From assembly GCA_002269645.1 (NCBI GenBank), contig NIVC01000257.1:186001-250000 (forward strand): DNA of 64,000 bases, read 5' to 3'. The DNA is from Macrostomum lignano. Lineage: Eukaryota. Below are positions 5,217 through 62,904 of the stretch, in pieces (positions within the stretch are counted from its first letter, which is position 1; every line of letters starts with the position of its first letter). A model generated the notes under the pieces. The model was given only the letters and a program-made list of their open reading frames with translations. It did not search any database and had not been told where the DNA came from. Position numbers and translations under genes: made by a program.

Positions 5217-6244
5217 TGTTCCTGCTGATCCTGTTGTGAATATTTGCTGAGCGATAGCAACAAGATTGCAAGTCTATACGAGTATGCGGGTTATTACGGT
5301 CCGGTCGGGCCCTGGCTTTATTTCATTCTTCTTTACCTCAAGACCCGCAGCAAGCCACCCCATCTACATCTCTTTCTCTCGGAGTGTATTTTTGCGACTC
5401 AGTCCCTGAGCACGCGTATGCGCAGTGCATTCCTATCTAGGCTACAGCAATAGCAAGATAAAGTAGTCTGCACCCCCCCCTCTCATAAGCTGGCGGGTGC
5501 TTGCGGTCGTAAATCGTTGAATAGTTGGTGACAATCTGTGGAGTTCTATGGAGTACTGAGACTCAGCATCTGGAGTGGAGTATGATGGCCAAGTCGTGGA
5601 GTCCTCAGACTTACAATATGGAAAGCTTTGGAACCGCCATTGTTTGTACACAAATTCTGGCTGTCAGTGCTAAACTTCTTTTGCGAATTTCCTTTGCAAA
5701 CTCTTCTGTCATGATTTGCTCGTCACACTCCACGCACTGCCCCTCATGGGGCATCCACCTTAATTGTTCCGAGCCTGGTTTTATCGCAACTGCTCAATGC
5801 TTGATTTCTCAACGCGTTGACCTATGATAAAAAGCAGAATTCACTTGTTTATCAGCTAGGTGGTCACGATTATTTGGTCTGACATTTGAATTTACATTAT
5901 ATTACACGTGAGGGCGTTTAAGTCAGAGCCGTTCAGGCGCGAATTCAAAGTTTGATACATTTACGAGTTTTTTTTGAGATTTGCTTTTTCCCACCAGCTA
6001 GATTTTCTTGTCATGATCGATTTTCTTATGATTCGAGCGTAGTTCGAGACAAACATTTCTTGCAGAGTAAATTTTTGAATGAAAGTTTTTTTCTGTTCTG
6101 TATAAATAAAAATTGCGCTTTTCTCGATATCCGAATGAAAACTTGAGTTTAGACGCCAATTGAACAACAGCGATAGAATTCACCACATGACACGTACGGT
6201 GCATGTATCAATAGCTGCACGGAGACCAGAGGTGCTTTGTCCCC

Positions 6245-9331: not shown

Positions 9332-12300
9332 ATGAGCTCACCAATCGATACCAACTGTATGACGCTCACAAGGTTCATCCTTGAAGAGCAAAAGAAGCAC
9401 AAGTCTGCTTCTGGTGACTTCACCAATATTATGACTGCCATCTGCACTGCTGTTAAGGCTGTTTCATCGGCAGTTCGTCGTGCTGGAATGAATTCCATGT
9501 AAGGCCAATCAATGTCTGTCATTTTTACACAAGTCAGAATGCATATAGGTTTTCTTCAATCAACTAACAATACTATTGTCTGTCATTAACTAGAGTCAGG
9601 TACAAACAAAGGTCATAGCTAGCTATTAGGGCTTAGGGCTTAAGCTAGGCCTATATAAAATATCTTATAAACTTGTATAATGTTACTATCACAATATACT
9701 AAATAGCTAAATATGCTGTCCTTCATCCTTCTTTCATTCAAATTATAATTTTATAGACAAAGCATTGATTGAATTGCTAAATTAAAATAGTTATATATTA
9801 TGTTATACTTTATATTATTGTTAAGCAGGTGCAAAGCCAGGATTAATGTCCAAGTGAACACAAAGACATCAATCTATCTCCCTTATTATATTAAACAGTC
9901 AGCAATCAAAGCAAAATATAAAAGTAATAAAAAAATTATCTCCCTTCTAAGATAGGACATGTCCTTGGTTGGTGTCCTCCCTATGCCCTTATTGTTAGAT
10001 ACTATTCTAAAATTTAGATAAATAATAAATATTATTTTTAATGTTTAGAATGCTCTTTATAATATAAATTATATAGGCATAGCTAATTAGTATTTTTATT
10101 TCTAATAAGTCTTAGCTATAATAAGTCTTATATTATATATAATATGTAATATTTTCTTTGCACTAATAATTGTCAACAAAAACTTGTAGTCTATAGTTAA
10201 ACTTAACAAATTGTCTAGAATAATTTGTTTTTTTAGTCAATCAGAATTGGGTTTTCTCAGAAACCTTTTTTGAATGCTTTTTAATTATCAATAAAAATAT
10301 GTTTAGCCAAAGGAAATTTACCCTTGTAATTTCTATTGCATAGGTTTGGCATGGCTGGTGGTCAAAATGTCCAAGGTGAAGATGTCAAGAAGCTGGATGT
10401 GCTGGCCAATGATCTCTTCATCAACATGCTGAGCTCAACATTTAAAGTGTGCGCTATGGTATCTGAGGAGAATAAAGACCTGATTGTGGTGGACTCTGAG
10501 CACGAGGGAAGGTACATCGTGTGCTTTGATCCTCTAGATGGTTCATCTAACATTGACTGCCTGGTGTCCATCGGCAGCATCTTCTGTGTGTTCCGCCGAC
10601 TTGGCGATGGCCCTGTGAGCACCAAAGACGCCCTGCAGCCTGGCGACCAGGTGGTTGGTGCCGGATATGCTCTGTATGGCAGCGCCACCATGGTTGTGCT
10701 ATCTCTGGGCGGTGGGGTCAACGGGTTCATGTTGGACCCGTCCATTGGTGAGACTGCCTGGCCTGCTTGGCCTTCCAAAAATTAATAATAGTGTGGTTAT
10801 TGATTCCTTTCTTTAGTATCCCACTGGGCTGCCATCTTTTCAGAGCCTCTCAGATTCTCCCAGATCCTCAGCTGCTGGCCAGCCTCCCAGATCCTCTGTT
10901 GCTGGCCAGCCTCCCAGATCCTCAGTTGCTAGGCCAGACTCCCAGATCCTCAGTTGCTGGGCCAGCATCCCAGATCCTCAGTTGCTAGGCCAGCATCCCA
11001 GATCCTCAGTTGCTGGGCCAGCATCCCAGATCCTCAGTTGCTAGGCCAGCCTCCCAGATCCTCAGTTGCTAGGCCAGCCTCCCAGATCCTCAGTTGCTAG
11101 GCCAGCATCCCAGATCCTCAGTTGCTAGGCCAGCCTCCCAGATCCTCAGTTGCTAGGCCAGCATCCCAGATCCTCTGTTCCTGGGCCAGCCTCCCAGATC
11201 CTCAGTTGCTAGGCCAGCATCCCAGATCCTCTGTTGCTGGGCCAGCCTCCCAGATCCTCAGTTGCTGGCCAGACTCCCAGATCCTCAGTTGCTAGGCCAG
11301 CATCCTAGATCCTCAGTTGCTAGGCCAGCCTCCCAGATCCTCAGTTGCTAGGCCAGCCTCCCAGATCCTCAGTTGCTAGGCCCGCCTCCCAGATCCTCAG
11401 TTGCTAGGCCAGCCTCCCAGATCCTCAGTTGCTAGGCCCGCCTTCCAGATCCTCAGTTGCTAGGCCAGCATCCCAGATCCTCAGTTGCTAGGCCAGCCTC
11501 CTAGATCCTAAGTTGCTAGGCCCGCCTCCCAGATCCTCAGTTGCTAGGCCCGCCTCCCAGATCCTCAGTTGCTAGGCCAGCATCCCAGATCCTCTGTTGC
11601 TGGGCCAGCCTCCCAGATCCTCAGTTGCTAGGCCAGCATCCCAGATCCTCAGTTGCTGGCCAGACTCCCAGATCCTCAGTTGCTAGGCCAGCATCCCAGA
11701 TCCTCAGTTGCTAGGCCAGCCTCCCAGATCCTCAGTTGCTAGGCCAGCCTCCCAGATCCTCAGTTGCTAGACCCGCCTCCCAGATCCTCAGTTGCTAGGC
11801 CAGCATCCCAGATCCTCAGTTGCTAGGCCAGCCTCCCAGATCCTCAGTTGCTAGGCCAGCATCCCAGATCCTCTGTTGCTGGGCCAGCCTCCCAGATCCT
11901 CAGTTGCTAGGCCAGCATCCCAGATCCTCAGTTGCTAGGCCAGCCTCCCAGATCCTCAGTTGCTAGGCCAGCCTCCCAGATCCTCAGTTGCTAGGCCAGC
12001 CTCCCAGATCCTCAGTTGCTAGGCCAGCATCCCAGATCCTCAGTTGCTAGGCCAGCCTCCCAGATCCTCAGTTGCTAGACCCGCCTCCCAGATCCTCAGT
12101 TGCTAGGCCAGCCTCCCAGATCCTCAGTTGCTAGGCCAGCATCCCAGATCCTCAGTTGCTAGGCCAGCCTCCCAGATCCTCAGTTGCTAGGCCAGCCTCC
12201 CAGATCCTCAGTTGCTAGGCCAGCATCCCAGATAGGCATATTGTGGCCTAAGAATCTCTAAGCCGCACCACCCCACGCAGGCGAATTTGTGCTAACGGAG

Positions 12301-12717
12301 CGCAACATGCGCATCAAGCCACGCGGCAAAATCTATTCAATCAACGAATCGTACGAGTCTACCTGGGACCAGGCTGTGAAGACCTACGTGCACAGCAAGA
12401 AGTACCCGGAGCCTGGCAAGCAGCTGTACGGAGCCCGCTACATCGGCAGCATGGTGGCGGACGTGCACCGGACCATCTGCTACGGTGGCATCTTCATGTA
12501 TCCGGCCACTAAGGACGCGCCGAAGGGCAAACTGCGCTTGCTGTACGAGTGCATCCCCATGGCCTTCATCATGGAGCAGGCGGGCGGTCAGGCCTCCACC
12601 GGTCGTGGCCGCATCCTGGAGATTGTGCCAACCGATATTCACCAGCGATCGCCAGTGTTCATGGGCTCCAAAGACGACGTGCAGGATGTTATCGATCTGT
12701 ACGCTAAGCTAGCTTGA
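9332..12717 (+). CDS. FBP1: Fructose-1,6-bisphosphatase class I, 335 aa; exons 9332..9498, 10344..10747, 12281..12717
   Basis: [77 protein letters not shown]; GT-AG junctions with matching phases (2, 1). Confidence 0.97.
10850..12232. repeat. 28-bp minisatellite (CCAGCCTCCCAGATCCTCAGTTGCTAGG), ~49 copies, FBP intron 2
   Basis: Directly visible tandem units. Confidence 0.95.
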
Positions 12718-14859: not shown

Positions 14860-15590
14860 GCATGCACGTAGTTGGATAATCGTCGGCTGTTGTCGTCGTC
14901 GCCGTCGTCGGCTGAAGGCGCTCAGCGGCTGCTGGATGGCCTGACGGCAGCAGCATCGCGAGTCGGCCTCATGCTGAACGCGCGGAAGACGGTAGTCTTC
15001 ACGGTGCCTTTCGACCTGCCTGCCGAGATCAACTACCGAGACGCTGCCGGGGAGGCAATCATGCCTACCCGTTGCCAGCGGTTCCTGTACCTCTGCGGCC
15101 TCGTGCCGGACGTTGCCGACGACCTGGTGAGACGACGAGGACTGGTCTGGGCCGCGTTTCGTTCTGGATGATGGGCTCAAGGCTCGGCTGTTTCAGGCAG
15201 TCGTTGAGACCTGGACCATGACGGACGCTTTGGAGAGGCAGCTGGACGCTGCACATGCGGCCATGCTGCGTGCGGCGTTCGGAGTGCGCAGCGGTCCAGG
15301 CAGCGAGACCAATGCCGCGCTCTACACGAGGGCACGCCTGATGCGGCCTTCTGCTTCTGACCTACTGCGTGGGCGGCGACTTCGACTGGCTGGCCATGTC
15401 ATCCGGTCGGGGGCTCGCTGCCCTGAGCCGCTGCACGAGGTGCTGCTGCTCAAGCTGCAGTGACCGCGCAGGCGAGGCCAAGGGCGAACGGCGAGATACC
15501 CTGACAGGCTTTTGACCGATGCTGGCGCCCCGGACCAAGCTGAGGGTGACTTTCTGAGGGCTATGGCCCAGAGACGCGCTCTCTGACTTC
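14860..15590 (+). mobile_element. RTE-type non-LTR retrotransposon, 5'-truncated decayed RT C-terminal fragment
   Basis: LLSSSP..AQRLLDGL..AASRVGLMLNARKT, FLYL.GLVPD, LDAAHAAMLRAAF, LRLAGHVIR; contains stops and deletions; homologous to 52526-53150. Confidence 0.85.
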
Positions 15591-17960: not shown

Positions 17961-18199
17961 ACCTCAGTGTACTACTGTGAGTAGGAAAGTAAAAATATTT
18001 TATGGATAAAGCGTATCTTTAAAAAATGTGTAGAATTAAATGCTCGTCTACATTTTAAACTCATTAAAAGCATATCTTTTCTAACAATATTTTACGCATA
18101 TTCGGACGCTTCTGTGCTTAAATCTTATGCTCTGTGAGTCCCATTAATCCACTCTAAGCAACAATAAGACAAGAGAATTACTGTTGATGGAGATAGGAA

Positions 18200-19508
18200 G
18201 GGAAGACAGGAACCCTTGAGATGAGAGTCGAGAGGGAGACAGGAACCCTTGAGATAAGAGTCGAGAGAGAGACAAGAACCCTTGAGATGAGAGTCGAGAG
18301 AGAGAGACAAGAACCCTTGAGATGAGAGTCGAGAGAGAGACAAGAACCCTTGAGATGAGAGTCGAGAGGGAGACAGGAACCCTTGAGATGAGAGTCGAAA
18401 GGGAGACAAGAACCCTTGAGATGAGAGTCGAGAGGGAGACAAGAACCTTTGAGATGAGAGTCGAGAGGGAGACAAGAACCTTTGAGATGAGAGTCGAAAG
18501 GGAGACAGGAAACCCTTGAGATGAGAGTCGAGAGGGAGACAAGAACCTTTGAGATGAGAGTCGAGAGGGAGACAGGAACCCTTGAGATGAGAGTCGAGAG
18601 GGAGACAAGAACCCTTGAGATGAGAGTCGAAAGGGAGACAGGAACCCTTGAGATGAGAGTCGAAAGGGAGACAAGAACCCTTGAGATGAGAGTCGAGAGG
18701 GAGACAAGAACCTTTGAGATGAGAGTCGAAAGGGAGACAGGAAACCCTTGAGGTGAGAATCGAGAGGGAGACAAGAACCTTTGAGATGAGAGTCGAGAGG
18801 GAGACAGGAACCCTTGAGATGAGAGTCGAGAGGGAGACAAGAACCCTTGAGATGAGAGTCGAAAGGGAGACAGGAACCCTTGAGATGAGAGTCGAAAGGG
18901 AGACAGGAACCCTTGAGATGAGAGTCGAGAGGGAGACAGGAACCCTTGAGATGAGAGTCGAAAGGGAGACAAGAACCCTTGAGATGAGAGTCGAGAGGGA
19001 GACAAGAACCCTTGAGATGAGAGTCGAAAGGGAGACAGGAACCCTTGAGATGAGAGTCGAGAGAGAGACAGGAACCCTTGAGATGAGAGTTGAAGAAGAG
19101 ACAAGAACCTTTGAGATGAGAGTCGAGAGAGAGACAAGAACCTTTGAGATGAGAGTCGAAAGGGAGACAGGAAACCCTTGAGATGAGAGTCGAGAGAGAG
19201 ACAAGAACCCTTGAGATGAGAGTTGAAGAAGAGACAAGAACCTTTGAGATGAGAGTCGAAAGGGAGACAGGAAACCCTTGAGATGAGAGTCGAGAGGGAG
19301 ACAAGAACCCTTGAGATGAGAGTTGAAGAAGAGACAAGAACCTTTGAGATGAGAGTCGAAAGGGAGACAGGAAACCCTTGAGATGAGAGTCGAGAGGGAG
19401 ACAAGAACCCTTGAGGTGAGAGTCGAGAGAGAGACAGGAACCCTTGAGATGAGAGTCGAGAGAGAGACAGGAACCCTTGAGGTGAGAGTCGAGAGAGAGA
19501 CAGGAACC
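18200..19508. repeat. 33-bp minisatellite (GAGATGAGAGTCGAGAGGGAGACAAGAACCCTT)
   Basis: Directly visible tandem units; source of spurious ORFs. Confidence 0.95.
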
Positions 19509-21640: not shown

Positions 21641-24600
21641 TCAGCTGGGTACAAATTTCTCGAAGCGATTTTTCAGTTCCGTCACGACAGCTTCCTGTTG
21701 AACAAAGTCCAGAATGAACGGCGCGTTCATTAAAATGGCAATGGTTCCTATAACTGTCACTGTGCTGAAAATGACCAATTGAATTCTGTCAATGACCGAG
21801 GCCACGTATTTCCAGTCTTGGAGAACCTGAAACGAAAAGATTGAATAAGGTGAAAAGTTGAAGCAGATAATTTCTTATGGGACGCTGCTTATGGGAGAAA
21901 ATCGACACGCTAAAAACAGACAGGGGTCAACTTTCTCCGTTAACCACTTTTCTCTCTCCTTTCTTGCCTTCTTCACTCGTCATCTGCAGCAAAGTAGGCT
22001 GTTTTCAATTGCAGGAGGGCTGCGAATTTCACCTAGTAGTTTCCCCTCAAGTTTTCTCTCTCCTTGCATTCTGCCTTGGGTCAGACACGCTCGCGACACA
22101 CTAGACAGCACGAGATGGATGCTTATCGAGTGGCACAAGAAGTTTTAGCGTAGCCTCAGCCTCCCCTAAGCCGGGCCCAACTGGCTTCATCAATACATGA
22201 CCAAGAGTAGCTGACGTCTCCCCTCCCATCCTATACTATTCAGTCTCCGTGAGTATGCTAGCCCAGTCTGCCGTATATATTACTGAGCCCGGCTTTCATA
22301 TTTAATCAGGTCTTCGCGACTGGACTTTCATCTGCCGGCATGCGCGGGAGCGGTGGGTGGCGGAGGGTCAATGTGGCATCGATTTCTGCAGGAACTCGCT
22401 TGAAATGCTTGGCTGTAGCATCACCCAGAGACTACACCCTCACCTTAAATAAATTCTCATGCAAAACGATCGACAGTGCTGTTAAAGGAGCGCTAATTAG
22501 TGACTGGACTGCGACCCAGTCTCTTGTGTGAGTTAGGCTTACGCTTCCAACACACTGCACTCCAGACAGATGGTGCAGTGTGTCATTTAATTTGGCAGTA
22601 AGCACCAGCCGATATAATTTTTTACGCCTGGCTCATCAATCAGACACACCTGAATCACTCATAGGACACACCTGGCTCACCAATCAGACACACCTGAACC
22701 TGGCTCACCAATCAGACACACCTGAACCTGGCTCACCAATCAGACACACCTGAACCTGGCTCACCAATCAGACACACCTGAACCTGGCTCACCAATCAGA
22801 CACACCTGAATCACCAATAGGACACATCTGGCCCACCAATCAGACACACCTGAATCACCAATAGGACACACCTGAATCACCCATAGGACACACCTGGCTC
22901 ACCAATCAGACACACCTGAATCACCCATAGGACACACCTGGTTCACCAATCAGACACACCTGAATCACCCATAGGACACACCTGGCTCACCAATCAGACA
23001 CACCTGAATCACCCATAGGACACACCTGGCTCACCAATCAGACACACCTGAATCACCCATATGACACACCTGGCTCACCAATCAGACACACCTGAATCAC
23101 CCATATGACACACCTGAATCACCCATAGGACACACCTGAATCACCCATATGACACACCTGAATCACCCATAGGACACACCTGAATCACCCATAGGACACA
23201 CCTGGCTCACCAATCAGACACACCTGAATCACCCATATGACACACCTGAATCACCCATAGGACACACCTGAATCACCCATATGACACACCTGAATCACCC
23301 ATAGGACACACCTGAATCACCCATAGGACACACCTGGCTCACCAATCAGACACACCTGAATCACCCATAGGACACACCTGGCTCACCAATCAGACACACC
23401 TGAATCACCCATATGACACACCTGAATCACCCATAGGACACACCTGAATCACCCATAGGACACACCTGGCTCACCAATCAGACACACCTGAATCACCCAT
23501 AGGACACACCTGGCTCACCAATCAGACACACCTGAATCACCCATAGGACACACCTGGCTCACCAATCAGACACACCTGAATCACCCATAGGACACACCTG
23601 GCTCACCAATCAGACACACCTGAATCACCCATATGACACACCTGGCTCACCAATCAGACACACCTGAATCACCCATAGGACACACCTGGCTCACCAATCA
23701 GACACACCTGAATCACCCATATGACACACCTGGCTCACCAATCAGACACACCTGAATCACCCATAGGACACACCTGGCTCACCAATCAGACACACCTGAA
23801 TCACCCATATGACACACCTGGCTCACCAATCAGACACACCTGAATCACCCAGAGGACACAACTGGCTCACCAATCAGACACACCTGAATCACCAATGGGA
23901 CACATCTGGCTCACCAAAATGCACACCGAGTCATTTTCTTATCCGCATCTTACCCGCATGTACTCGTCCTCAATACGCAGATGCGTCGCTATGAGGTTAA
24001 TGGCGGCCACCGACTTTTGCAGCTCCGGTGTGACCCGCAATCCTCGGAGGCCTCGAGGCGGCTGCTCAGGTTGCTGCTGGGGCTGCTGCTGATCGTAGAG
24101 GCCGCCAGAACTATCGAATCCAGCGTCGAAAGACGACGAAGGCATGGCGCCGATGTGCTGAGCCTGTCGCTGCCGATCAGCTCCAAGGTCGGCGGTGTCG
24201 CCGCCGCCGCCATTGCACTTGTCGGCATCGGTCATGCGGTCCATTCGCCACTTGTCCGCCTCCTCCTGGTCGATGTGCTCCGGTCGTTTCATAAGCAAAA
24301 CTTGGGGCAGGTATTTGAGGAACACCAGGCGGACCCAGTTCGGCATCTTGTGCGTCCTCGGCGTCCGGAAGTTCCAGTTGATGATGATCACGGTGAACAC
24401 AATGGTGATAGTATTCATGATGAATGTGAACAGCAAGAACTTTGAGATCAGCGGTATTGAGATTGAAGTTGGCGGCAGAATCTTGCTGACTAGCAGGAGG
24501 AACACAACCAGAGCCAGCAGAATCGAGATGCAGAGCGTCATCTTTTCTCCAGCATCCGCTGGCAGATAGAAAACGCACACGCTGAGCAGGGAGATGAGAA

Positions 24601-27600
24601 CACAGGGAATGATCAGGTTGACAGTGTAGAACAGGGTCTTCCGCCTGATGGTGATGGTGTAGATCATCATAGTCTGGGGCGCCTGACCGACCTTCTCAAT
24701 TTTTGTTACATTTCCCGGACAATCGATAATGTCCCAGGAGCCAGATTTCCAATACGAATTCATGTCGGCCACTCCCGGACCGTCAAGCATCACCTGCGTT
24801 TTTGATAAACACAAAAATGATACATAAATGGTTTTAAAAAGTGAGAGATTTCTAGCCAGACCTTGGACTTGAAGGCACTGCGGCAAAGAATAACTACTCG
24901 TACGACATGGACTGACTACATTGACCATTCTGTCTGACAGGATGTACATTTCACCCCACCCTCCGCGACCATTCCTTGCGTCTCCATTTCTACCGTTCCC
25001 GCCAAGCCTGTCTGATAGTATGTACATTAACTGAGTGCGGCTTCTACCCAACTCCATTCGAGACTTTCACTTCGTCCCGATTCCTATCCTCGCCAAGCCT
25101 GTCCAATAAAATAAAGTGTACATTCACTGAGTGCGGCTCCCACCCCAAACCACTTCATTCCGATACTTTCACTCCAAGCCTGTACGATAGTATGTACATT
25201 CACTGAATGCGACTTCCCACCTCATTCCAGTCCACCACCCCTATCTCCGTCTCCATTTCTCCATGTATGTACATTCGCTGAGCGTATAGCTACCACCCCA
25301 CTCCATTCTTTGTTCTCTCCCTTCTTTTTTATACAAATCGTTTTTCTTATAGTGCCTCACTTGAGTAGCATCAAACGTCCAACTGCCGAACTTCATTTCG
25401 CACTCCTGCTGATCAAACGGGAAGTATCTGACGTGAATTGTACAGGTACTCTGGTAAATTGCAGGCGGCATCCACATAATGTAACCGCTGCTGTAGATCA
25501 AAATGTTGGGCAGCCATGACGTTTCATACTTGCCGTCCGCGCTGCAAAGTTTCAAATGAATTTTCGATTTCTAGGTAAAACGGTCACTGAAGGGACTCAA
25601 ATCTACTCTAATGATCTGCCCCACCACAAGCTTCAGTAGTGATCTGCCCCACCACAAGCTTCAGTAGTGAACTGCCCCCACTACAAGCTTCAGTAGTGAA
25701 CTGCCCCACCACAAGCTTCAGTAGTGAACTGCCCCCACCACAAGCTTCAGTAGTGAACTGCCCCCACCACAAGCTTCAGTAGTGAACTGCCCCACCACAA
25801 GCTTCAGTAGTGAACTGCCCCACCACAAGCTTCAGTAGTGAACTGCCCCACCACAAGCTTCAGTAGTGATCTGCCCCACCACAAGCTTCAGTAGTGATCT
25901 GCCCCACCACAAGCTTCAGTAGTGATCTGCCCCACCACAAGCTTCAGTAGTGATCTGCCCGACCACAAGCTTCAGTAGTGAACTGCCCCACCACAAGCTT
26001 CAGTAGTGATCTGCCCCACCACAAGCTTCAGTAGTGATCTGCCCCACCCCAAGCTTCAGTGATCTGCCCCACCCCAAGCTTCAGTGATCTGCCCCACCCC
26101 AACTGTCCCTACGCGTCACTCACTTGTTAAACAGGACAATGTCCGGATTCCATGCCCGGTCGGGGTGAACTCGAATAATTGAAACGCCGCCAAAGTCCTT
26201 CGGATCCCATCTGAGCTGATAGTCGTACCAGCTCTGTTTAATAGAGAATTATTAAAGGTGTAGATCTGATCTACCGAGTGTCTCTTGACTGAAAGACCTA
26301 AAATCAATTTCAAAATAAATATCTACCAAGTTTCCCTTTTTAGCTCCTTACAAAGTTGACGAACTGTAAACAGTTGTTCGCTTGGAGAGTGAAAAACAGG
26401 GGTACTGGAAGAATGTAAAAATAAGGATAAAACATCCCGCTTGACCAGCTGTTGGGTTAACAGAGGGCGAACCCTACGAAAAGTGCGCCTATTTGGGTCT
26501 TGAAGCACAAATTCAAACCCATCTCTCACCAGCTTCAACCAAACGTTGCTCTTCATGATCTGAGCCTTCTCTTCCTGAAAATTGTTTCAGTTAGAGCTTC
26601 ACGACTGCTTGAAGTGAAGTTTATTCATGCTATATATGGTAGTAGTATATGCAGCACGTACCACATTGATGATCTGTATGATTGACAGAGTGAATTCAAC
26701 TTTCACCGTGGCATTTAAACTGGTTACTGGCCGTATTAGCCTATTGTAGCCCTTGTGCTGGAAGAGCAGGTGAGCCAGGCGCACTTCCTCATCGGTTGTG
26801 GCGGCTGCGAAATCGAGATTCGGGGGAAGCCTTGTGGATTGATAGCTGATTGACTGACATTGGAGCTAAATAGACGGTACGTTGGCTGGCTGATATGGGA
26901 ATGTACGAGCTTCATAGGAGCTGAATATTAGGGGAGGGTTGACTGACTGGTCTGGATGTACATTGGAGCTGAATATTAGGGGAGGGTTGACTGACTGGTC
27001 TGGATGTACATTGGAGCTGAATATTAGGGGAGGGTTGACTGACTGGTCTGGATGTACATTGGAGCTTAATATTAGGGGAGGGTTGACTGACTGGTCTGGA
27101 TGTACATTGAAGCTTAATATTAGGGGAGGGTTGACTGACTGGTCTGGATGTACATTGGAGCTGAATATTAGGGGAGGGTTGACTGACTGGTCTGGATGTA
27201 CATTGGCGTTAAAAGGATTGGCTGACTGGTCTAGATGTACATTGGAGTTAAAAGGGTTGGCTGACTGGTCTAGATGTACATTGGAGTTAAAAGGGTTGGC
27301 TGACTGGTCTAGATGTACATTGGAGTTAAAAGGGTTGGCTCAGTGATCTGGGTGTACTTTGGACTAAAAAAGACAGAGGGTTGGATGACTCATCTAGATG
27401 TGCATCGGTAAACAGAGTTTTGATTAATAACTCATCTAGACGTAAAAAATAATAAAGTAGGTAAATCCTTTGATTACATGAGCGTCTCACAGTCTTTACT
27501 CTGTAATACTGATTAAATTAGAAACTGGCTAAGCGGTATTTGAAGCAAAGATAAGAAAGATTTCATTCAATTACTCACCGGCTGCGGTGCCGAAATTTGA

Positions 27601-27639
27601 GGCAGACATGAGAAGCAGCAGCAGCAGCGTCCGCAGCAT
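21641..27639 (-). CDS. nAChRbeta1: Nicotinic acetylcholine receptor non-alpha (beta1-like) subunit, paralog A, 521 aa; exons 27639..27579, 26804..26662, 26574..26530, 26233..26124, 25541..25361, 24793..23954, 21826..21641
   Basis: Signal peptide, [15 protein letters not shown], [10 protein letters not shown], W.PDIVL.NNADG, Cys-loop [59 protein letters not shown]. No loop-C vicinal Cys. All junctions are GT-AG and in phase. Confidence 0.95.
22630..23915. repeat. 22/44-bp higher-order minisatellite (CACACCTGAATCACCCATAGGA / CACACCTGGCTCACCAATCAGA), nAChR-A intron 6
   Basis: Alternating related 22-bp subunits. Confidence 0.95.
25612..26100. repeat. 28-29-bp minisatellite (GATCTGCCCCACCACAAGCTTCAGTAGT), nAChR-A intron 4
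   Basis: Directly visible tandem units. Confidence 0.95.
26920..27360. repeat. 48-bp then 42-bp minisatellite (GACTGACTGGTCTGGATGTACATTGGAG...), nAChR-A intron 1
   Basis: Directly visible tandem units. Confidence 0.9.
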
Positions 27640-31715: not shown

Positions 31716-33325
31716 AAATCGCCCCAGCCAAGGAATCGCCCCGCCAAAGAATCGCCCCAGCCAAAAAATCGCCCCAGCCAAAGAATCTCTCCCGCCAAGG
31801 AATCGCCCCAGCCAAAGAATCTCCCCCGCCAAGGAATCGCCCCAGCCAAGAAATCGCCCCAGCCAAAAAATCGCCCCAGCCAAAGAATCTCTCCCGCCAA
31901 GGAATCGACCCAGCCAAAGAATCTCCCCCGCCAAGGAGTCGCCCCAGCCAAAGAATCGCCCCAGCCAAAAAATCGCCCCAGCCAAAGAATCTCTCCCGCC
32001 AAGGAATCGACCCAGCCAAAGAATCTCCCCCGCCAAGGAATCGCCCCAGCCAAAGAATCGCCCCAGCCAAAGAATCGCCCCAGCCAAAAAATCGCCCCAG
32101 CCAAAGAATCTCTCCCGCCAAGGAATCGCCCCAGCCAAAGAATCTCCCCCGCCAAGGAATCGCCCCAGCCAAAGAATCGCCCCAGCCAAAGAATCGCCCC
32201 AGCCAAAAAATCGCCCCAGCCAAAGAATCGCCCCAGCCAAAGAATCGCCCCAGCCAAAAAATCGCCCCAGCCGAGGAATCGCCCCCGCCAAGGAATCGCC
32301 CCCGCCAAGAAATCGCCCCAGCCAAAAAATCGCCCCAGCCAAAAAATCGCCCCAGCCAAGGAATCGCCCCCGCCAAGGAATCGCCCCCGCCAAGAAATCG
32401 CCTCAGCCAAAAAATCGCCCCAGCCAAAGAATCTCCCCCGCCAAGGAATCGCCCCAGCCAAAAAATCGCCCCAGCCAAGGAATCGCCCCAGCCAAAGAAT
32501 CTCCCCAGCCAAAGAATCGGCCCAGCCAAAAAATCGCCCCAGCCAAAGAATCTCTCCCGCCAAGGAATCGCCCCAGCCAAAGAATCTCCCTCGCCAAAGA
32601 ATCTCTCCCGCCAAGGAATCGCCCCAGCCAAAGAATCTCCCTCGCCAAAGAATCTCCCTCGCCAAGGAATCGCCCCAGCCAAGGAATCGCCCCAGCCAAA
32701 GAATCGCCCCAGCCAAAGAATCGCCCCAGCCAAGGAATCGCCCCCGCCAAGGAATCGCCCCCGCCAAGAAATCGGCCCAGCCAAAAAATCGGCCCAGCCA
32801 AGGAATCGCCCCCGCCAAGGAATCGCCCCCGCCAAGAAATCGCCCCAGCCAAAAAATCGCCCCAGCCAAAAAATCTCCCCCGCCAAGAAATCGCCCCAGC
32901 CAAAGAATCGCCCCAGCCAAAAAATCGCCCCAGCCGAGGAATCGCCCCCGCCAAGGAATCGCCCCCGCCAAGAAATCGCCCCAGCCAAAAAATCGCCCCA
33001 GCCAAAGAATCTCCCCCGCCAAGGAATCGCCCCAGCCAAAAAATCGCCCCAGCCAAAGAATCGCCCCAGCCAAAGAATCTCCCCAGCCAAAGAATCGGCC
33101 CAGCCAAAGAATCGGCCCAGCCAAAAAATCGCCCCAGTCAAAGAATCTTCCCCGCCAAGGAATCGCCCCAGCCAAAAAATCGACCCAGCCAAGGAATCGC
33201 CCCAGCCAAAGAATCTCCCCAGCCAAAAAATCGGCCCAGCCAAAGAATCGCCCCAGTTAAGGAATCGCCCTAAAGAATCACCCCAGCCATGGAATCGCCC
33301 AAAAGAATCGCCCTAAAGAATCGCC
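31716..33325. repeat. 17-bp minisatellite (AAGAATCGCCCCAGCCA), ~90 copies; right arm of inverted pair A
   Basis: Directly visible; source of the 500+ aa spurious ORFs. Confidence 0.95.
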
Positions 33326-34228: not shown

Positions 34229-37200
34229 TCAGGCAGTCTTTGCCTTCAGGGCGTTGATGATGGCCGTCTGGTCGACGAAGTCCAAAATGAACGGCGCGTT
34301 CAACAAAATCGCCCCGGTGCCAACCAGGGTGACCACGCCGAAGATGAGCAGCTGGACTCGGTCAATCACGGATGCCACGTATTTCCAGTCTTGGAGCACC
34401 TGCGGGAGCGTGGGAGAGTAGCTTGGTCTATGACCCGAGCTGTCCATGATCAAAGCTGTCTATGACCCAAACTGTCTATGACCCAAACTGTCTATGACCC
34501 AAACTGTCTATGACCCAAACTGTCTATGACCAAAGCTGTCTATGACCCAAACTGTCTATGACCCGAGCTGTCCATGATCAAAGCTGTCTATGACCCAAAC
34601 TGTCTATGACCGAACTGTCTAAGATCAAAGCTGTCTATGACCCAAACTGTCTATGACCGAACTGTCTATGACACCCCCAAGTGTCTATGACCCGAACTGT
34701 CTATGACCCGAACTGTCTATGACTCGAACTGTCTATGACCCGAAATGTCTATGACCCGAACTGTATATGACACCCCCAAGTGTCGATGACCCGAACTGTC
34801 TATGACCCGAACTGTCTATGACTCGAACTGTCTTTGACCCGAAATGTCTATGACCCGAACTGTATATGACACCCCCAAGTGTCTATGACCCGAACTGTCT
34901 ATGACTCGAACTGTCTATGACCCGAAATGTCTATGACCCGAACTGTATATGACACCCCAAGTGTCTATAGACCCATAGGTCATAGACCCGAACTGTCTAT
35001 GACCCGAACTGTCATGGCCCGAACTGTCTATGACCCGAACTGTTTATGACTAGAACCGAAACTCACCCGCTTGTATTCGTCCTCGATGCGCAGATGAGTG
35101 GAGATGAAGTTGATAGCCGCAATCGCCTTCCTCAGCTCAGGCGTCACCTCCACTCCGGCAAATCTCTGCGGCTCGGCGGCCTCGGCGGCCTCGGCCGTCT
35201 CTTCCGGCGGCATCGACGACCTGCCCGACCGTCGAAAGTCGCGCAGCTCCAGCAGCTCCGGCGACGGTTCCACGTCGTCGACATCGTTAACGCCGAAATC
35301 CAGGCCTCCGCCAGTGACGTCCTCGAAGCTGTGCAAGTCGCGTCGGCGACGCCGACTGACTCCGCCGCCGGTTTCGCCGCCGTTGCAGCGGTCGGTCATG
35401 CGGTCCATTCGCCAATTGTCATTCTCCTCGCGTTTGATGTGCTCTGGCCGCTTCATCCACAGCAGCTTGGGCAGGTATTTGAGAAACACCAGGCGGACCC
35501 AGTTCGGCATCTTGTGCGTCCTCGGCGTCCGGAAGTTCCAGTTGATGATGATCACGGTGAACACAATAGTGATGATGTTCATGATGAATGTGAACAGCAG
35601 GTACTTTGAGATCAGCGGTATTGAGATTGAAGTCGGCGGCAGAATCTTGCTGACTAGCAGGAGGAACACAACCAGAGCCAGCAGAATCGAGATGCAGAGC
35701 GTCATCTTTTCTCCAGCATCCGCTGGCAGATAGAAAACGCACACGCTGAGCAGGGAGATGAGAACACAGGGAATGATCAGGTTGACAGTGTAGAACAGGG
35801 TCTTCCGCCTGATGGTGATGGTGTAGATCATCATAGTCTGGGGCGCCTGACCGACCTTCTCGATCTGTGTGATGTTGCCCGGACAGTCGATGATGTCCCA
35901 GGAGCCCGACTGCCAGTAATCGTTCAGGTCCATGAACTTCACGCCTTCGTACCAGTCCAGCCCGACCTGCGAGTCACGTGAGGCGCTGGTGATTAATTAC
36001 CCGATGATTCAATATCCCACTGATCTAAGGTCCCACTGATCTATGATCCCAATGATCTAAGATCCCAATTATCTAAGATCCCAATGATCTAAGATCCCAA
36101 TGATCTAAGGTCCCAATGATCTAGGATCCCAATGATCTGAGATCCCACAGATTAATGATCCCAATGATTTATGATCCCACAGATTTAAAATCCTAAGATC
36201 TAAGATCCTAATTATCAAAGATGCCAGTGATTTAAAATCCCTAAAATCCCAATTATCTAAGATCCCAATGATTTATAATCCACATAGTCTAAGATATGCA
36301 TAGTCTAAGAATGCAAGGATGAAAAATTATTGGGAAATTGAAATGACACATTAAAAAGCCGACCTTTTGATGTCCTACGAGCGTAATATTTGAAAATCTG
36401 ATTGATCTTAATTAATTAAAATCCTGAAAGCTTCCAAGCACCGCAGTCGATTCTTCCAAGGTCCCACTTATAAAGCCGCATAAAAGATCCCAAGTCTTAA
36501 GAGGATCACCTGAGTTGCGTCGAAAGTCCAGCTTCCGAACTTCATCTCGCACTCCTGCTGATCGAACGGGAAGTACCGGACGTGGATGGTGCAGGAGCTT
36601 TTGTAAATCGCTGGCGGGATCCACAGGATGTTGCCCGTGTTAAAGATGAGGATGTTTGGCTGCCAGGACACTTCGTACTTGCCGTCGGCGCTGCGAAATC
36701 AAATGTACTTTTAATTACATTTCGAATATCCGTAATTAAGGAGACAATCTAGTGACAGAAATCAGTCAAATGGCTCACTTATTATACAGAACAATGTCCG
36801 GTTTCCATATTTTGTTTGGGTTGACTCGAATGACTTTGATGCCGCCAAAGTCCGTGGGGTCCCAGCGCAGCTGATAGTCGTCCCACGTCTGAAATGATTT
36901 ATTAGTTATGAGAATACTGTTTATGAACCACACTGTCTATGACCCAAACTGTCTATGACCTAAACTGTCTATGACCCAAACTGTCTATGACCTAAACTGT
37001 CTATGACCCAAATTGTTTAAGACCCAAACTTTCTATGACCCAAACTGCTGTCTATGACCTAAACTGTCTATGACCCAAACTGTCTATGACCTAAACTGTC
37101 TATGACCCAAATTGTTTAAGACCCAAACTTTCTAATACCCAAACTGTCTATGACCCAAACTTTCTATGACCAAAACTGTCTATGACCTAAACTGTCTATG

Positions 37201-40200
37201 ACCCAAACTGTCTATGACCTAAACTGTCTATGACCCAAATTGTTTAAGACCCAAACTTTCTAATACCCAAACTGTCTATGACCCAAACTTTCTATGACCA
37301 AAACTGTCTATGACCAAAATTGTCTATGATCCAACCTGTCTGATCCGAATCGTCTATGACCCGATCTATCTATGACCCGAAGTATCTATGACCCAAACTG
37401 TCTATGACCGAAACTGTCTATGACCCGAAGTATCTATGACCCGAGGTATCTATGACCCTGAAGTATCTATGACCCTGAAGTATCTATGACCCGATGACCC
37501 AAATTGTTTAAGACCCAAAAAAAACTTGACAAAAAAACTAGCCAAAACAGAAACTGCCCCCCCCCTGTCACAAACAGAAGAGCAAAATTAAAGTTAAATC
37601 ATCGTACCATTCGTAGCCAGACGTTACTTTTCATTATTTGACTCTTCTCCTCCTGAAAGCAGAAATCAGCGGGTTTGAAATATCATATTTCGTATAATAC
37701 ACGAGAACTGACTACTAAAGGGAGGTAATTCTCTCCTGACCATTTTTTGCTGCGCCGGAACTCAGCAATGCAGGCAAACGAAATTCAAGAACACGGCCTA
37801 AAATTTTTGTGCGCACCTTCTCAAACAAGAATCAAGTCGCCAGCCTTCCGGACCGTCGAGATATTCGACGATTCTGCCAGAAGGTCGGGTTTTTCCCATA
37901 AGAGTCTGTATTCAGTACACCCCTGTGCGCCAACCAGCACTGCACCTCAGTGCAGCCTTGCCATGCCTCCAAATTTCATCAGTACGCCGACCACTGACTT
38001 CGTTGGTCACTGGCCTTCACCCAGGCGGAGCTTCAAGACCTTCAACAGGGGGCACCATGTGACTATGGACACCTTGACCTTGACGCGAATTTCTCAAGTT
38101 TCGCTGATCAAGCCTCGACAGCGGGCAAGCCTCAACTGCTGGACATCCTCAGCTAGTTTCTCGAGCATTTAGTCATCACCCGGACGCCGTCGGCACCTTC
38201 AACAGGTGGCACCAGGTGACTATGAAGATCCTGTTGCAACTATATCAGATTTTTCTTATCAAGCTTCAATAATGAGCAAACCTCAACTGCTGGACAACCT
38301 CAGCTAGTCTCTCGAGCATTTAGTCATCACCCGGACGCCGTCGGCACCTTCAACAGGTGGCACCAGGACAGCCTGTTGCAAGTTTCTCCGATGTCTCTGA
38401 TCAAGTCTCGACACTGGGGCTGAATTCTGGCTGAATTGTTGAATATCTCGACGGTCAGGAGGGCTGGCGAGTTGATTCTTGTTTGATAAGATGCGCCAGT
38501 GTCCTTAAACTTCTTGTGCCCGCCTTGGTCCGTTCCCTGACAAGCTTATGACTGGCTCCTCAGTGGTACTCGGGTAGTGTTTATTCCATTATCCAAAGTA
38601 CAATTTGCACTTTTAGAATATTTTACACCCCACCGGGGCAGACCGCACAGCTCACCACATTGATCAGCTGCACCATGGCCAGTCCGAATGCGACTTTGAC
38701 AGTCTGGTTCAGGTCTGCCACCGGCCTGATTAGCCTGTTGTAGCCTTTGTGCTTGAACAGCAGGTTCACCAGCTTCACTTCGTCATCGCTGCCCAGGCCT
38801 GCGAGTGTGCAGTTGTGTTTTTAATGTGAAATTTGGGTTAGGGTTTTGTCTATGGCTATAGTTATGGTTAAGGTTGGGTTATGGCTAGGTTTAGGTTTAG
38901 GTTTAGGTTTAGGCTTAGGTTTAGGTTTGGGTTTAGGTTTAGGTTTAGGTTTAGGTTTAGGTTTAGGTTTAGGTTTAGGTTTGGGTTTAGGTTTGGGTGT
39001 AGGTTTAGGTTTAGGTTTAGGTTTAGGTTTGGGTTTGGGTTTAGGTTTGGGTGTAGGTTTAGGTTTAGGTTTGGGTTTGGGTTTAGGTTTGGTGTAGGTT
39101 TAGGTTTAGGTTTAGGTTTAGGTTTAGGTTTAGGTTTGGGTTTGGGTGTAGGTTTAGGTTTAGGTTTAGGTTTAGGTTTAGGTTTAGGTTTAGGGTTAGG
39201 GTTAGGTCTAGGTCTAGGTCTAGGTCTAGGTTTAGGTTAAGGTTAGGGTTAAGTTTAGGTTTAGAGTTTAGGGCTAGGTTTTCTGGTTTAGGTTAGGTTA
39301 GGTGTAGGGTTGGGTGACTGGACGATATCATCGTTAGGAATCGTTATTTTGTTTAATCGTTAATAATGAACAATACACGATTCATTACCGTGGATGCCAT
39401 TAAAAAGAAGTGTCATGCAGACCGCTATGCTTATTAAATGCATGGTTAAAACGACATAAGAACTCTTGTATGCCTATAGCTGGTCCTTATAATAGTTGGA
39501 TATAACAGTATTGCTATCTAGCCTCATCACATTGATGCTGAATCAGCGAGTCGTGTTGACTTAGGCAAACACAGAAAACACAGGCAGTCTGATAGTCAGG
39601 CAGTGCCTAAGCGGTACAGAGATTTGAGATCGGAAATGTCAATAAGTAATTCGTGTTCTGCATGTAGATGCCCAGAGCACATCACTCAGAAATATCTGAG
39701 CAATAGACTCCATCTCTCCCTGTCTGCCTCAGCTTGTGTGCTTATCTTTTTTTGCTAAGAAAAATTTAACAAAGCAATTAAAAAATTCAGTGCATCGGTG
39801 TCTGACAGGCAAGAGTATCACACGCTTTCATTTCCAATAATTTCAGCCAGACAGTTTATCAAATCGAGAGGTCTTTCGCGAGGCGAATAAGCTTGAAGGT
39901 TAAAAGTACATTTCTAATGTTTCCTCGTCTCGCTTCGTCCGATTTCTGCATGCTTGAAGCACCTGCCGCCCGATGAAATTATTGGTTAATTAGCACTCCC
40001 CTCCCAGAGCGTGGGGAAAATTGATGCGAAAATTGAAGGAAATATGGAGGCAGAAACTGATGTAGGAGAGAGGGACGACAGCGAGGTACAGAATGAGATT
40101 AATGAGGATTTAACTTTTACGATATACGAACAAGGATGAAGAGAGAGGTATGCGGCAGGTAATGAGGCTGGAGAGAGATATGAGGCAGATAATGAGGCTG

Positions 40201-41550
40201 GGGAGAGATATGAGGCAGATATTGAGGCTGGAGAGAGATATGAGGCAGATAATGAGGCTGGGGAGAGATATGAGGCAGCTAATGAGGCTGGGGACAGATT
40301 AGGCAGATAATGAGGCTAGGGAGATATGAGGCAGATAATGAGGCTGGGGACAGATTAGGCAGATAATGAGGCTGGGGAGAGATATGAGGCAGCTAATGAG
40401 GCTGGGGACAGATTCAGCAGATAATGAGGCTAGGGAGATATGAGGCAGATAATGAGGCTGGGGAGAGATATGAGGCAGCTAATGAGGCTGGGGACAGATT
40501 AGGCAGATAATGAGGCTGGGGAGAGATATGAGGCAGCTAATGAGGTTGGAGAGAGATATGAGGCAGATAATGAGGCTGGGGAGAGATATGAGGCAGCTGA
40601 TGAGGCTGGGGACAGATTAGGCAGATAATGAGGCTGGGGAGAGATATGAGGCAGCTAATGAGGCTGGGGACAGATTAAGCAGATAATGAGGCTAGGGAGA
40701 TATGAGGCAGATAATGAGGCTGGGGAGAGATATGAGGCAGCTAATGAGGCTGGGGACAGATTAGGCAGATAATGAGGCTGGGGAGAGATATGAGGCAGCT
40801 AATGAGGTTGGAGAGAGATATGAGGCAGATAATGAGGCTGGGGAGAGATATGAGGCAGCTGATGAGGCTGGGGACAGATTAGGCAGATAATGAGGCTGGG
40901 GAGAGATATGAGGCAGCTAATGAGGTTGGAGAGAGATATGAGGCAGATAATGAGGCTTTCTCCAATGGTTCAAATTTCTTTCTTCTTAATCTTTCCAGAA
41001 AATTTCACCGAAAGATTTTTATTTTGGAAGATTTACGAGATTCATAAGTCAAGAAAACACCGGAACAGCAGATAAATCTCCAGGAATGACGTCATGTTAC
41101 TGAATAAAGTTGAAACAAATGTGCGAATAGGATTCACTGATGAATATCAAGGAGCTTTGACTGGTGAATCAGCAGTTGGGGAGGGTGGATTAACAGCCAA
41201 CGCAGGTAGATCAGCAGCCAGCAAAGGTGAATTATCAGCTGAGCACAGATAGATTATCAGCTGAGTACATGTGGATTATCAGATAAGCACAAGTGGATTA
41301 TCAGCTAAGCACAGGTGGATTATCAGCTAAGTACAGGTGGATTATCAGCTAAGCAAAGGTGGATTATCAGCTAAGCGCAGGTGGATTATCAGCTAAGCGC
41401 AGGTGGATTATCAGCCAAGCGCAGGTGGATTATCAGCCAAGCGCAGGTGAACTTACCGCTTTCTCGCACCTGCAGCGACAGCCGCACGCAGAAGCAGGCG
41501 GCGATCAGGCAGCTGGCAAGCCGTGGTGTCGGCAACGGCGCCCACCTCAT
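34229..41550 (-). CDS. nAChRbeta1: Nicotinic acetylcholine receptor non-alpha (beta1-like) subunit, paralog B, 547 aa; exons 41550..41457, 38798..38656, 37652..37608, 36888..36779, 36690..36510, 35966..35067, 34399..34229
   Basis: Same motifs and intron positions/phases as paralog A (internal exons 143, 45, 110 and 181 bp); no loop-C CC. Confidence 0.95.
34425..35050. repeat. 16-bp minisatellite (CTGTCTATGACCC(A/G)AA), nAChR-B intron 6
   Basis: Directly visible tandem units. Confidence 0.95.
36010..36300. repeat. Degenerate ~16-bp repeat (GATCCCAATGATCTAA), nAChR-B intron 5
   Basis: Visible degenerate units. Confidence 0.8.
36925..37520. repeat. 16-bp minisatellite (CTGTCTATGACCCAAA), nAChR-B intron 3; same family as 34425-35050
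   Basis: Directly visible tandem units. Confidence 0.95.
38835..39310. repeat. Telomere-like hexamer (TTTAGG)n with TTTGGG/TTAGGG/TCTAGG variants, nAChR-B intron 1
   Basis: Directly visible. Confidence 0.95.
40140..40955. repeat. ~28-31-bp minisatellite (GAGATATGAGGCAGATAATGAGGCTGGGGA), nAChR-B intron 1
   Basis: Directly visible tandem units. Confidence 0.9.
41215..41450. repeat. 21-bp minisatellite (CAGGTGGATTATCAGCTAAGC-like) abutting the nAChR-B exon 1 donor
   Basis: Directly visible tandem units. Confidence 0.85.
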
Positions 41551-42374
41551 GGCGAGCGAGTTGGGAAGCTTGCGGCAAACCGTCAGAGCCGGAGGAGGCG
41601 GCAGACTTGATGAGGCAAATCGCTAATAACCATGCTCCAGACTATGGCTGCCTCTCCGCTTCATTTTGCTACTTTTTCAGGTGAGGAAACTGGAACACAG
41701 TCTGCGGCACTTCAAACTGCAGAGCTGGCCGGGGTGTTTAGGTGTGGTGAGGGTGGAGACTGCTTGAGGGATGAAGCAGAGAAACTGTATTTGTGTGAAT
41801 TAAGCCGGCTGGCTGAGGCGGGAGGGGCTGTGGGGGTGGGGGCTGCTGGGATCTGCGTGTGTAATGGAGGGGGGCTCGGCCGAGTTTCACAGCGAAGGGA
41901 TGAGGAAGCCGGGAAGGGAGATTGACCCCTGGCCGTGAGCCCGCGCGTGCTCCATCTTCATCATAAGCAGAATCCCAGGATTCCCCAATCCCATGCCCTG
42001 CAGCAGCTTTCTCTTGCTTCCTCGTCCTTTGCTGCTTTTGCACCAGCCTCCTCCCGTCTCCTAGCAGGTCAGTTGGACCGCTCGTCTCCTTCCGTGGACT
42101 CTCCTCTGCACTGCCCCCGCCTGCACTGTACTGGGCGCTGCGACGTCTCCTATTGGAGGGCGACATCGCATCAATCCGCCCTCATCCTGGTGGAATATTC
42201 AGGCTCTTCAGGGCTGCAGGCCTCAACCCATCCCACCCCCAGGGCTGTCCATCTCCGTCGCCTTCTCTGGCAGGGTGGGGCTGGTCGGTCACTCTCTGTT
42301 TTTCTCTCTCGCCCTCGCCCTCTTCTCCCTCTTCGTTGCTCTGCTTTTTTTTTCCTATTCTACTACTTACTATG

Positions 42375-54385: not shown

Positions 54386-62904
<8,519 letters not shown>

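Follow-up and report, generated by a model that had tools for sequence, protein, structure and literature searches.

The window analysed here, a stretch of 64 kb of DNA, contains two genes predicted to encode nicotinic-receptor-type subunits, termed A and B, which are located head-to-tail on the minus strand at a distance of 11,164 bp and share a tract that is identical base for base within coding regions that are diverged elsewhere. This raises the question of whether the tract reflects a transfer of DNA between the genes, constraint on its nucleotides, a young duplication or an error of the assembly. The original prediction had proposed a recent interlocus gene conversion that homogenises the channel pore while the ligand-binding domains diverge.

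Results

Gene models and receptor class

The regions of A and B were compared with each other. Both genes follow a common exon plan (Table 1), are complete with canonical splice sites (AG/GT borders) and are the only two such receptor genes within the window. Their reading frames are intact, with pN well below pS, and both look functional as judged from these properties. The interpretation of A and B as alternative exon sets of one gene was rejected, since each has a full series of exons 2-7, its own stop and its own plausible signal-peptide exon. Minisatellite arrays of up to 3.7 kb are resolved in the assembly of this region.

The assignment of both genes to the nAChR type, as originally made, is reflected in the presence of the Pfam domains PF02931 and PF02932 over nearly the full length of the proteins (E-values 1e-59 to 1e-67), in a signature Cys-loop of 15 residues with 13 residues between the two cysteines, in four membrane helices and in best matches to solved structures of the human alpha4, beta2 and beta4 subunits (E = 1e-119). 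A chimera of CHRNA7 and CHRFAM7A was also found among the PDB matches. The M2 entrance is of the cation-channel type in both proteins, with a Glu at position -1' as part of a GEK motif and without the Pro-Ala-Arg motif of anion channels, and a 27-residue M2 stretch, which is the same in A and B, aligns to M2 of human alpha4. By this entrance, both are predicted to be cation-type channels. The 17-residue loop C sequences contain no pair of adjacent cysteines in either protein, at a position where human alpha4 reads YECCAEIY, and the absence of this vicinal pair argues for non-alpha (beta-like) subunits. Judged by their sequences, A and B are thus classified as nicotinic-receptor-type Cys-loop subunits of the non-alpha kind.

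The two proteins share 49-55% identity with invertebrate proteins named 'acetylcholine receptor subunit beta-like 1', and the named proteins most closely related to them are P0124 and P0125 from Macrostomum lignano (71% and 68% identity, within a range of 68-73%). P0124 is the protein closest to B; the matches of the protein search contained no closer counterpart of A. The beta-like 1 proteins of arthropods, molluscs and annelids, and P0124 and P0125, resemble A and B in both Pfam domains, the 13-residue Cys-loop, the four membrane helices, the GEK ring preceding M2 and the absence of vicinal cysteines in loop C. The P0125 gene (locus L004) also displays the same seven-exon plan, but no second receptor gene lies within ±10 kb of it, whereas A and B form a tandem pair. 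Synteny with this locus is weak, with only a GST-type gene in common (43% identity). When exon 6 alone was used as query, the protein search yielded only exon-sized fragments with identities of at most 75%. The metagenome or assembly contigs with the best of these matches (L001-L003) contain single receptor genes and are therefore unsuited to a sister-species test.

Table 1. Features of the two receptor genes, with positions counted from the first letter of the window.
Feature	Position	Strand	Basis or remark
Gene A, predicted non-alpha nicotinic-receptor-like subunit	21641-26804	minus	gene model; Pfam Neur_chan_LBD, Neur_chan_memb
Gene A exons 2-7	26662-26804, 26530-26574, 26124-26233, 25361-25541, 23954-24793, 21641-21826 (with stop)	minus	gene model
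Gene A candidate signal-peptide exon	27579-27639	minus	gene model
Gene A exon 6 (840 bp; loop C, M1-M3, whole cytoplasmic loop)	23954-24793	minus	AG/GT borders
Gene B, predicted paralog	34229-38798	minus	gene model; Pfam Neur_chan_LBD, Neur_chan_memb
Gene B exons	38656-38798, 37608-37652, 36779-36888, 36510-36690, 35067-35966, 34229-34399 (with stop)	minus	gene model
Gene B candidate first exon	39389-39443 or 41457-41550	minus	gene model
Gene B exon 6 (900 bp)	35067-35966	minus	AG/GT borders
Cys-loop	A 25400-25444; B 36549-36593	minus	gene models
Gene A tract copy (inside exon 6)	24471-24697	minus	exact identity with 35635-35861; residues 192-267 of modelled mature protein
Gene B tract copy, probable donor (inside exon 6)	35635-35861	minus	exact identity; GC3; distance to M. 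lignano
Post-loop-C strand, gene A	24641-24697	minus	domain mapping
M1, gene A	24560-24640	minus	domain mapping
M2, gene A	24479-24547	minus	domain mapping
Gene A extension (rest of M2-M3 linker, M3, start of cytoplasmic loop)	24305-24470	minus	difference list
Gene B extension counterpart	35469-35634	minus	constant offset of 11,164 bp, no indel

The shared tract and its surroundings

In the assembly sequence, the exact match comprises 227 bp and cannot be extended by a single base on either side, in agreement with the boundaries that had been claimed for it and with the described identity at all synonymous sites. The tract spans M1 and M2, as had been stated, and the loop connecting them. Of the M2-M3 linker it includes no more than the initial three codons, and on the side of loop C it covers the strand that follows this loop. 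Among 338 aligned codons that specify the same degenerate amino acid in both genes, the longest series free of silent differences encompasses 72 codons (residues 192-266 of gene A), compared to a maximum of 39 in 200,000 shuffles, none of which reached the observed value (analytic estimate about 2e-18). At the nucleotide level, the run of 227 contrasts with a maximum of 52 in 20,000 shuffles. The identical run is far beyond chance.

Sliding Nei-Gojobori estimates of pS and pN along A and B illustrate that divergence is not uniform. Outside the tract, silent sites are saturated on both sides (pS 0.6-0.9), whereas pS drops to 0 over the 75 codons of residues 192-266 (58 silent sites) and amounts to 0.15 in the following 56 codons (residues 267-322), with both breakpoints residing inside exon 6. 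The divergence that had been noted for the extracellular exons, the M4 exon and the cytoplasmic loop, latter of which is also part of exon 6, concerns silent and replacement sites alike. The Cys-loop window (residues 131-160) serves as internal control, with a pN of 0.01 yet a pS of 0.92.

Beyond the exact match, near-identity had been described to continue through M3 with about eight differences. This number is correct: we count eight in the 393 bp between 24305 and 24697, seven of them in 24404-24470 and one at 24320, and near-identity reaches 24305. The low-divergence block consists of 227 exact bp, 67 bp with about 10% difference and 99 bp with a single one, and it is followed further downstream by a halo of lowered silent divergence. 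Two amino acids are replaced between A and B in residues 267-322 and none in the core. This mosaic suggests more than one event or a patchy repair of heteroduplex DNA, and ongoing local concerted evolution in this segment.

The gradation also bears on the possibility that similar tracts were made identical, or that one was collapsed onto the other, during assembly or polishing as a consequence of mis-mapped short reads. With a length of 227 bp and flanks that are 98% identical, the block is sufficiently short for such mis-mapping, short-read polishing could erase a few real differences and thereby inflate a near-identical tract to an identical one, and a scan of public metagenome contigs with a 56-bp piece of the tract revealed no independent copy. 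However, a pasted sequence would have sharp edges rather than a difference that is graded from 0% over about 10% to about 1% and into a halo, both breakpoints are located within otherwise well-resolved, diverged exons, and the resolution of the minisatellite arrays suggests that long reads were used. Were the true identity of the core no higher than about 98%, silent divergence would still collapse in this segment and the conflict between trees described below would persist. We thus consider an artefact to be improbable.

Comparison with M. lignano genes

As outgroup at the DNA level we have used one gene from one genome, encoding M. lignano P0125. In the tract, pS with respect to this gene is 0.46 for both A and B, and the 75 tract codons of B differ from it at 27 of the 58 silent sites, a level comparable to that in the remainder of the gene. 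When inspected in another nAChR-type gene, the silent sites of the tract are thus diverged, and silent-site constraint therefore cannot explain the identity of A and B. The alternative that would rely on such constraint assumes purifying selection on nucleotides, imposed by an RNA structure, an editing site, a splicing enhancer or an extreme codon preference, in the absence of any DNA transfer. It would find a rationale in the M1-M2 protein sequence, which is almost invariant across phyla, and in the fact that nicotinic-receptor transcripts are RNA-edited in some invertebrates. Besides the described silent differences between B and the M. lignano gene, it is opposed by the Cys-loop stretch, whose protein sequence is equally conserved despite its high pS. 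Nucleotide constraint is thus already largely refuted, and we regard it as extremely unlikely.

The relationships of the genes differ between tract and flanks. Over the extracellular domain, identity to the M. lignano proteins amounts to 88% and 83% for B, while A shares 72% with each of these two and with B. In the tract, the identity of A and B is 99%. In neighbor-joining trees based on identity distances, the extracellular domain joins B to the M. lignano genes and leaves A outside on a long branch, whereas the tract groups A with B. The same conflict is found in the site patterns of the triplet consisting of A, B and the M. lignano sequence (M). Outside the tract, 172 sites support B=M≠A, 106 A=B≠M and 85 A=M≠B, whereas the respective numbers in residues 192-266 are 0, 36 and 0 (Fisher p = 2e-15). 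The best-supported recombinant window extends from 24311 to 24705 (chi-square 83). The split of A and B appears to predate the separation of gene B and its M. lignano relatives. A young copy A that evolves fast and an old duplication are not fully distinguishable in neighbor-joining trees of this type, but the saturation of silent sites speaks for an old duplication.

The same data bear on a young duplication followed by very fast divergence of everything except the pore, or on a single unequal crossover that has generated a chimeric gene. The long branch of A in the extracellular-domain tree, which marks it as the faster-evolving copy, would be in line with the former. In contrast, fast protein evolution does not yield saturated silent sites on both sides of the tract (pS 0.65-0.9), an unequal crossover would leave one switch point instead of the two that were found, and in its flanks B resembles the M. 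lignano genes more than it resembles A. Either of these scenarios has, in our view, hardly any probability.

Direction of transfer

The third-position GC content (GC3) is 0.78 in the tract and 0.78 in B outside of it, compared to 0.63 in A outside the tract, and the codon-usage log-likelihood of the tract favours B by about 12 units. In addition, pS between A and the M. lignano gene, at 0.68-0.84 in the flanks, drops to 0.46 within the tract, where it equals the value of B. GC3 and codon usage, in conjunction with the distance to the outgroup, thus point to B as the most likely donor and A as the recipient. The sites that inform timing and direction are few, obtained from one genome and one outgroup gene, and GC-biased conversion or a domain-specific codon usage could mimic the direction signal in GC3.

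Discussion

The properties of the shared tract make it highly probable that a recent interlocus gene conversion has overwritten about 230-400 bp of exon 6 between two old tandem paralogs. This part of the original prediction is supported by the collapse of pS, by the freedom of the tract to vary with respect to M. lignano and by the conflicting trees of tract and flanks. In the course of events that we envisage, a tandem duplication in the same orientation would have occurred long ago, with silent sites having become saturated since. Non-allelic conversion would then have overwritten the segment of exon 6 encoding M1, M2 and M3, most likely from B into A, and repeated events or patchy heteroduplex repair would have left the mosaic block. 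Homology-dependent repair would begin and persist most easily in M1-M3 because conserved coding DNA runs here for about 400 bp within one exon, longer without interruption than anywhere else in A and B, whereas the equally conserved Cys-loop resides in a 181-bp exon between unrelated introns.

The location of the tract could also reflect selection. In this case, conversion would be real but its restriction to the pore would be maintained because identical pore helices are favoured in co-assembling subunits whose ligand-binding faces diversify. Repeated or nested events in the same segment and the apparent functionality of both genes would be compatible with this proposal. However, the homology length required for recombination accounts for the location equally well, and the pore is so conserved that conversion alters almost no amino acids. 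We thus judge selection for the restriction to be unlikely, and slightly more doubtful still is its extended form, in which recurrent, selection-favoured conversion would keep M1-M3 of putatively co-assembling subunits identical while their ligand-binding domains diverge freely. The proposed homogenisation of the pore alongside diverging ligand-binding domains holds as a description, and a selective restriction to the pore would go beyond it.

Interlocus gene conversion between tandem duplicates is well known from globin genes, the red and green opsins, RHD/RHCE and CYP21A2/CYP21A1P. As in these systems, the tract in A and B is hundreds of bp long with both breakpoints in homologous coding sequence, its silent sites are homogenised while the flanks retain their old divergence, and the copies are close and in the same orientation, with a mosaic tract that suggests recurrent events. 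Unlike in these cases, the genes concerned are predicted Cys-loop receptor subunits of a flatworm. Within the nicotinic-receptor family, human CHRNA7 and CHRFAM7A, the latter of recent origin and fused to another gene, similarly contain a coding part that is almost identical at two loci. However, these originate from a partial duplication, in contrast to the putative conversion patch between two old and complete paralogs described here. In full-text searches of one literature library, no paper was found that describes conversion restricted to the M1-M3 pore module in Cys-loop receptors, and searches for gene conversion in paralogs of nicotinic or other ligand-gated channels and for Macrostomum receptors found nothing specific; an apparent match turned out to be a CRISPR reference. 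The described case adds a further example to a process that is well known and ordinary for tandem duplicates, and it leaves the knowledge of the mechanism unchanged.

Collectively, the two genes offer a clean and well-bounded example of probable gene conversion within a neurotransmitter-receptor gene pair. They illustrate that orthology may be misjudged when such receptors are compared by trees of their transmembrane region, since the tract unites A with B whereas the extracellular domain unites B with the M. lignano genes, and that tracts of this kind should be left out when dating receptor duplications in flatworms and in other expanded invertebrate families. If the subunits encoded by A and B co-assemble, the pair would constitute a natural experiment on the independent evolution of ligand-binding and pore modules. 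If the reading based on selection were true, it would represent a modular concerted evolution of an ion channel, which could be a general route by which expanded invertebrate receptor families acquire new pharmacology with their conductance undisturbed.

Two tandem receptor genes and their surroundings

The original prediction that the two genes, here termed A and B, are paralogs encoding nicotinic receptor subunits is borne out by the ligand-binding and transmembrane domains of neurotransmitter-gated channels detected by Pfam in both proteins, by their top matches among solved structures (the human alpha4, beta2 and beta4 nicotinic subunits, E = 1e-119), and by the presence of a C-x13-C Cys-loop and a GEK ring preceding M2. 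Since the vicinal cysteine pair is missing from loop C, both are non-alpha subunits. The named proteins closest to them come from Macrostomum lignano (two sequences, 71% and 68% identical to A); 'beta-like 1' subunits from nemerteans, annelids, arthropods and molluscs rank next with some 50-55% identity. On these values, the window would derive from a flatworm that is a relative of M. lignano rather than M. lignano itself. Gene models built from a translated comparison of both regions and inspection of splice sites provided two complete genes of identical exon plan, with AG/GT at every internal border and a terminating stop codon in either case. The genes are arranged head-to-tail at a separation of 11,164 bp, and no third copy is found within the 64-kb window. 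Candidate signal-peptide first exons were picked by a scan for ATG, hydrophobicity and a phase-1 donor.

Coordinates of genes and other features in the window
Feature	Position	Strand	Remarks
Gene A exons	26662-26804, 26530-26574 (45 bp), 26124-26233, 25361-25541, 23954-24793, 21641-21826	minus	
Gene A candidate first exon	27579-27639	minus	MLRTLLLLLLMSASNFGTAA, GTGAGT donor
Gene B exons	38656-38798, 37608-37652, 36779-36888, 36510-36690, 35067-35966, 34229-34399	minus	
Gene B candidate first exon	39389-39443 or 41457-41550	minus	two alternatives
Fructose-1,6-bisphosphatase, two exons	10330-10782, 12262-12714	plus	Pfam FBPase, FBPase_C
GST_N_4/GST_C_6 gene	4572-5273, also 3685-3816	minus	metaxin/FAX-like
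DEG/ENaC long open exon	54377-55417	plus	matches N-terminal half of amiloride-sensitive sodium channel family
Two related ORFs	14872-15460, 52458-53090	plus	resemble C-terminal part of retroelement polyprotein; ~65% nucleotide identity
Example arrays	42373-46071, 10857-12233, 18199-19508, 31717-33300, 59864-61671, 55790-56668		

Arrays of minisatellites or microsatellites (repeat period 4-48 bp) occupy about 24.7 of the 64 kb (39%), an unusually high density for a gene-bearing region, and attain lengths of up to 3.7 kb (23-25 bp unit x153). Several reside within introns of A and B: introns 6 (34426-35050) and 3 (36916-37492) of gene B contain a common 16-bp family in arrays that are about 79% alike, to which the arrays in gene A introns (22633-23917 and 25612-26102) are unrelated. 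The fructose-1,6-bisphosphatase intron consists almost entirely of a 28-bp array of 49 copies, and the DEG/ENaC exon has a poly-Gln run in front of it and a GIGV/GWGL-type low-complexity repeat behind it. The two related ORFs, for which no Pfam match was obtained, may be decayed non-LTR elements. The GST gene is 43% identical to a GST downstream of the gene of P0125, the M. lignano receptor used as outgroup, which amounts to weak synteny between the two loci. Close to it, 3864-4181 shows translated similarity to a repeat in an intron of the P0125 gene (11458-13191 of its locus, L004), probably reflecting a shared mobile element.

Extent of the identical tract

Both copies of the tract are located on the minus strand. 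In an ungapped comparison, 24471-24697 and 35635-35861 match at 227 of 227 bp with a mismatch at the next base on either side, confirming the predicted boundaries as exact. Self-BLAST defines a wider similarity (24205-24754 versus 35375-35918, 91% identity) and four further, weaker paralogous blocks at roughly constant offset. The block 24305-24697 contains 8 differences in 393 bp, in line with the number anticipated for the near-identity beyond the core, seven of which are confined to 67 bp (24404-24470, four within 10 bp), with the last at 24320. As illustrated by this clustering (binomial tail ~3e-5, uncorrected and for a window chosen after the data were seen), the block is a mosaic of two near-perfect tracts flanking a less converted patch, which would fit two separate events as well as a single heteroduplex with patchy mismatch repair. 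A second identity island of 22 bp (24229-24250 and 35393-35414, codons for WRMDRMT) occurs in the cytoplasmic loop, where silent divergence is reduced over aa 323-352 of gene A, and may have been left by conversion tracts that were older and longer.

Silent divergence along the genes

Nei-Gojobori estimates from a codon alignment revealed the predicted non-uniformity, with a silent divergence (pS) of 0 in the identical tract (aa 192-266, 58 silent sites, replacement divergence pN 0), compared to 0.71 in extracellular exons 2-5 (pN 0.15), 0.85 in the 5' part of exon 6, 0.65 in the M4 region and 0.92 in the Cys-loop window (aa 131-160). The latter is a good internal control because the protein is nearly invariant (pN 0.01) yet its silent sites are saturated. 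The 5' edge of the low-divergence zone is abrupt, while downstream, pS is 0.15 at aa 267-322 (pN 0.016) and still somewhat low (0.3-0.5) as far as about aa 350, a stretch including the 22-bp island. The longest run devoid of silent differences comprises 72 codons, compared to at most 39 in 200,000 shuffles of the silent-difference flags. As the large exon 6 encompasses loop C, M1-M3 and the entire cytoplasmic loop, both tract ends fall within one exon. The two breakpoints and the saturated silent sites on both sides contradict a young duplication with fast-diverging flanks or a single unequal crossover.

Comparison with the P0125 gene

The genomic sequence of the P0125 gene was retrieved; the gene shares the seven-exon plan of A and B, and translation of its spliced CDS reproduces the protein exactly. 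Over the tract (75 codons), 27 of the 58 silent sites distinguish it from A and B (pS 0.46), which is comparable to the pS of 0.48-0.63 separating it from B outside the tract. These sites are thus free to change, which contradicts an explanation of the A/B identity by constraint at the nucleotide level. For the extracellular domain, the identity of B is 88% and 83% with the M. lignano proteins and only 72% with A, which in the corresponding tree lies outside a group formed by the other three, whereas the tree of the tract unites A and B (99% identical). Outside the block, 172 sites show B=P0125≠A, 106 A=B≠P0125 and 85 A=P0125≠B, compared to 0, 36 and 0 at aa 192-266 and 6, 23 and 2 at aa 267-322 (Fisher p = 2e-15), with 24311-24705 as best recombinant window. 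Polishing or collapse of the assembly may at most have inflated an identity of about 98% to 100%, but such an artefact would yield neither the graded, mosaic pattern nor the conflict between trees.

The silent distance of A to M. lignano decreases from 0.68-0.84 to 0.46 within the tract, which is the level of B. The GC3 of the tract (0.78) equals that of the B flanks (0.78) rather than the A flanks (0.63), and codon usage favours B by a log-likelihood difference of about 12. Silent distance and codon usage both suggest that B was the donor and A the acceptor. GC-biased conversion could account for part of the GC3 signal.

Discussion

Our observations are best explained by non-allelic gene conversion between tandem paralogs of old origin, with a recent date for the 227-bp core. 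The originally proposed recent interlocus conversion is supported by the collapse of silent divergence, the two breakpoints, the tree conflict and the P0125 control. With no difference at 58 silent sites, the divergence of the core is a small fraction of the distance between B and M. lignano, and the conversion affecting M3 and the halo beyond it would be older. M1-M3 is the longest unbroken stretch of conserved coding DNA in both genes (about 400 bp in a single exon), whereas the equally conserved Cys-loop occupies an exon of 181 bp whose flanking introns are unrelated. M1-M3 would offer the longest substrate for homology-dependent repair, which each conversion event would renew. We infer that the location is set by this homology length, which renders an adaptive explanation unnecessary but is compatible with one.

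The literature searched contained no report of a conversion tract in paralogs of nicotinic or other Cys-loop receptors, which is weak evidence of absence. In every respect tested, the tract conforms to classical interlocus conversion between tandem duplicates, adding a further example of an established process. It is of moderate relevance for the evolution of the receptor family and advises caution in phylogenies based on transmembrane regions.
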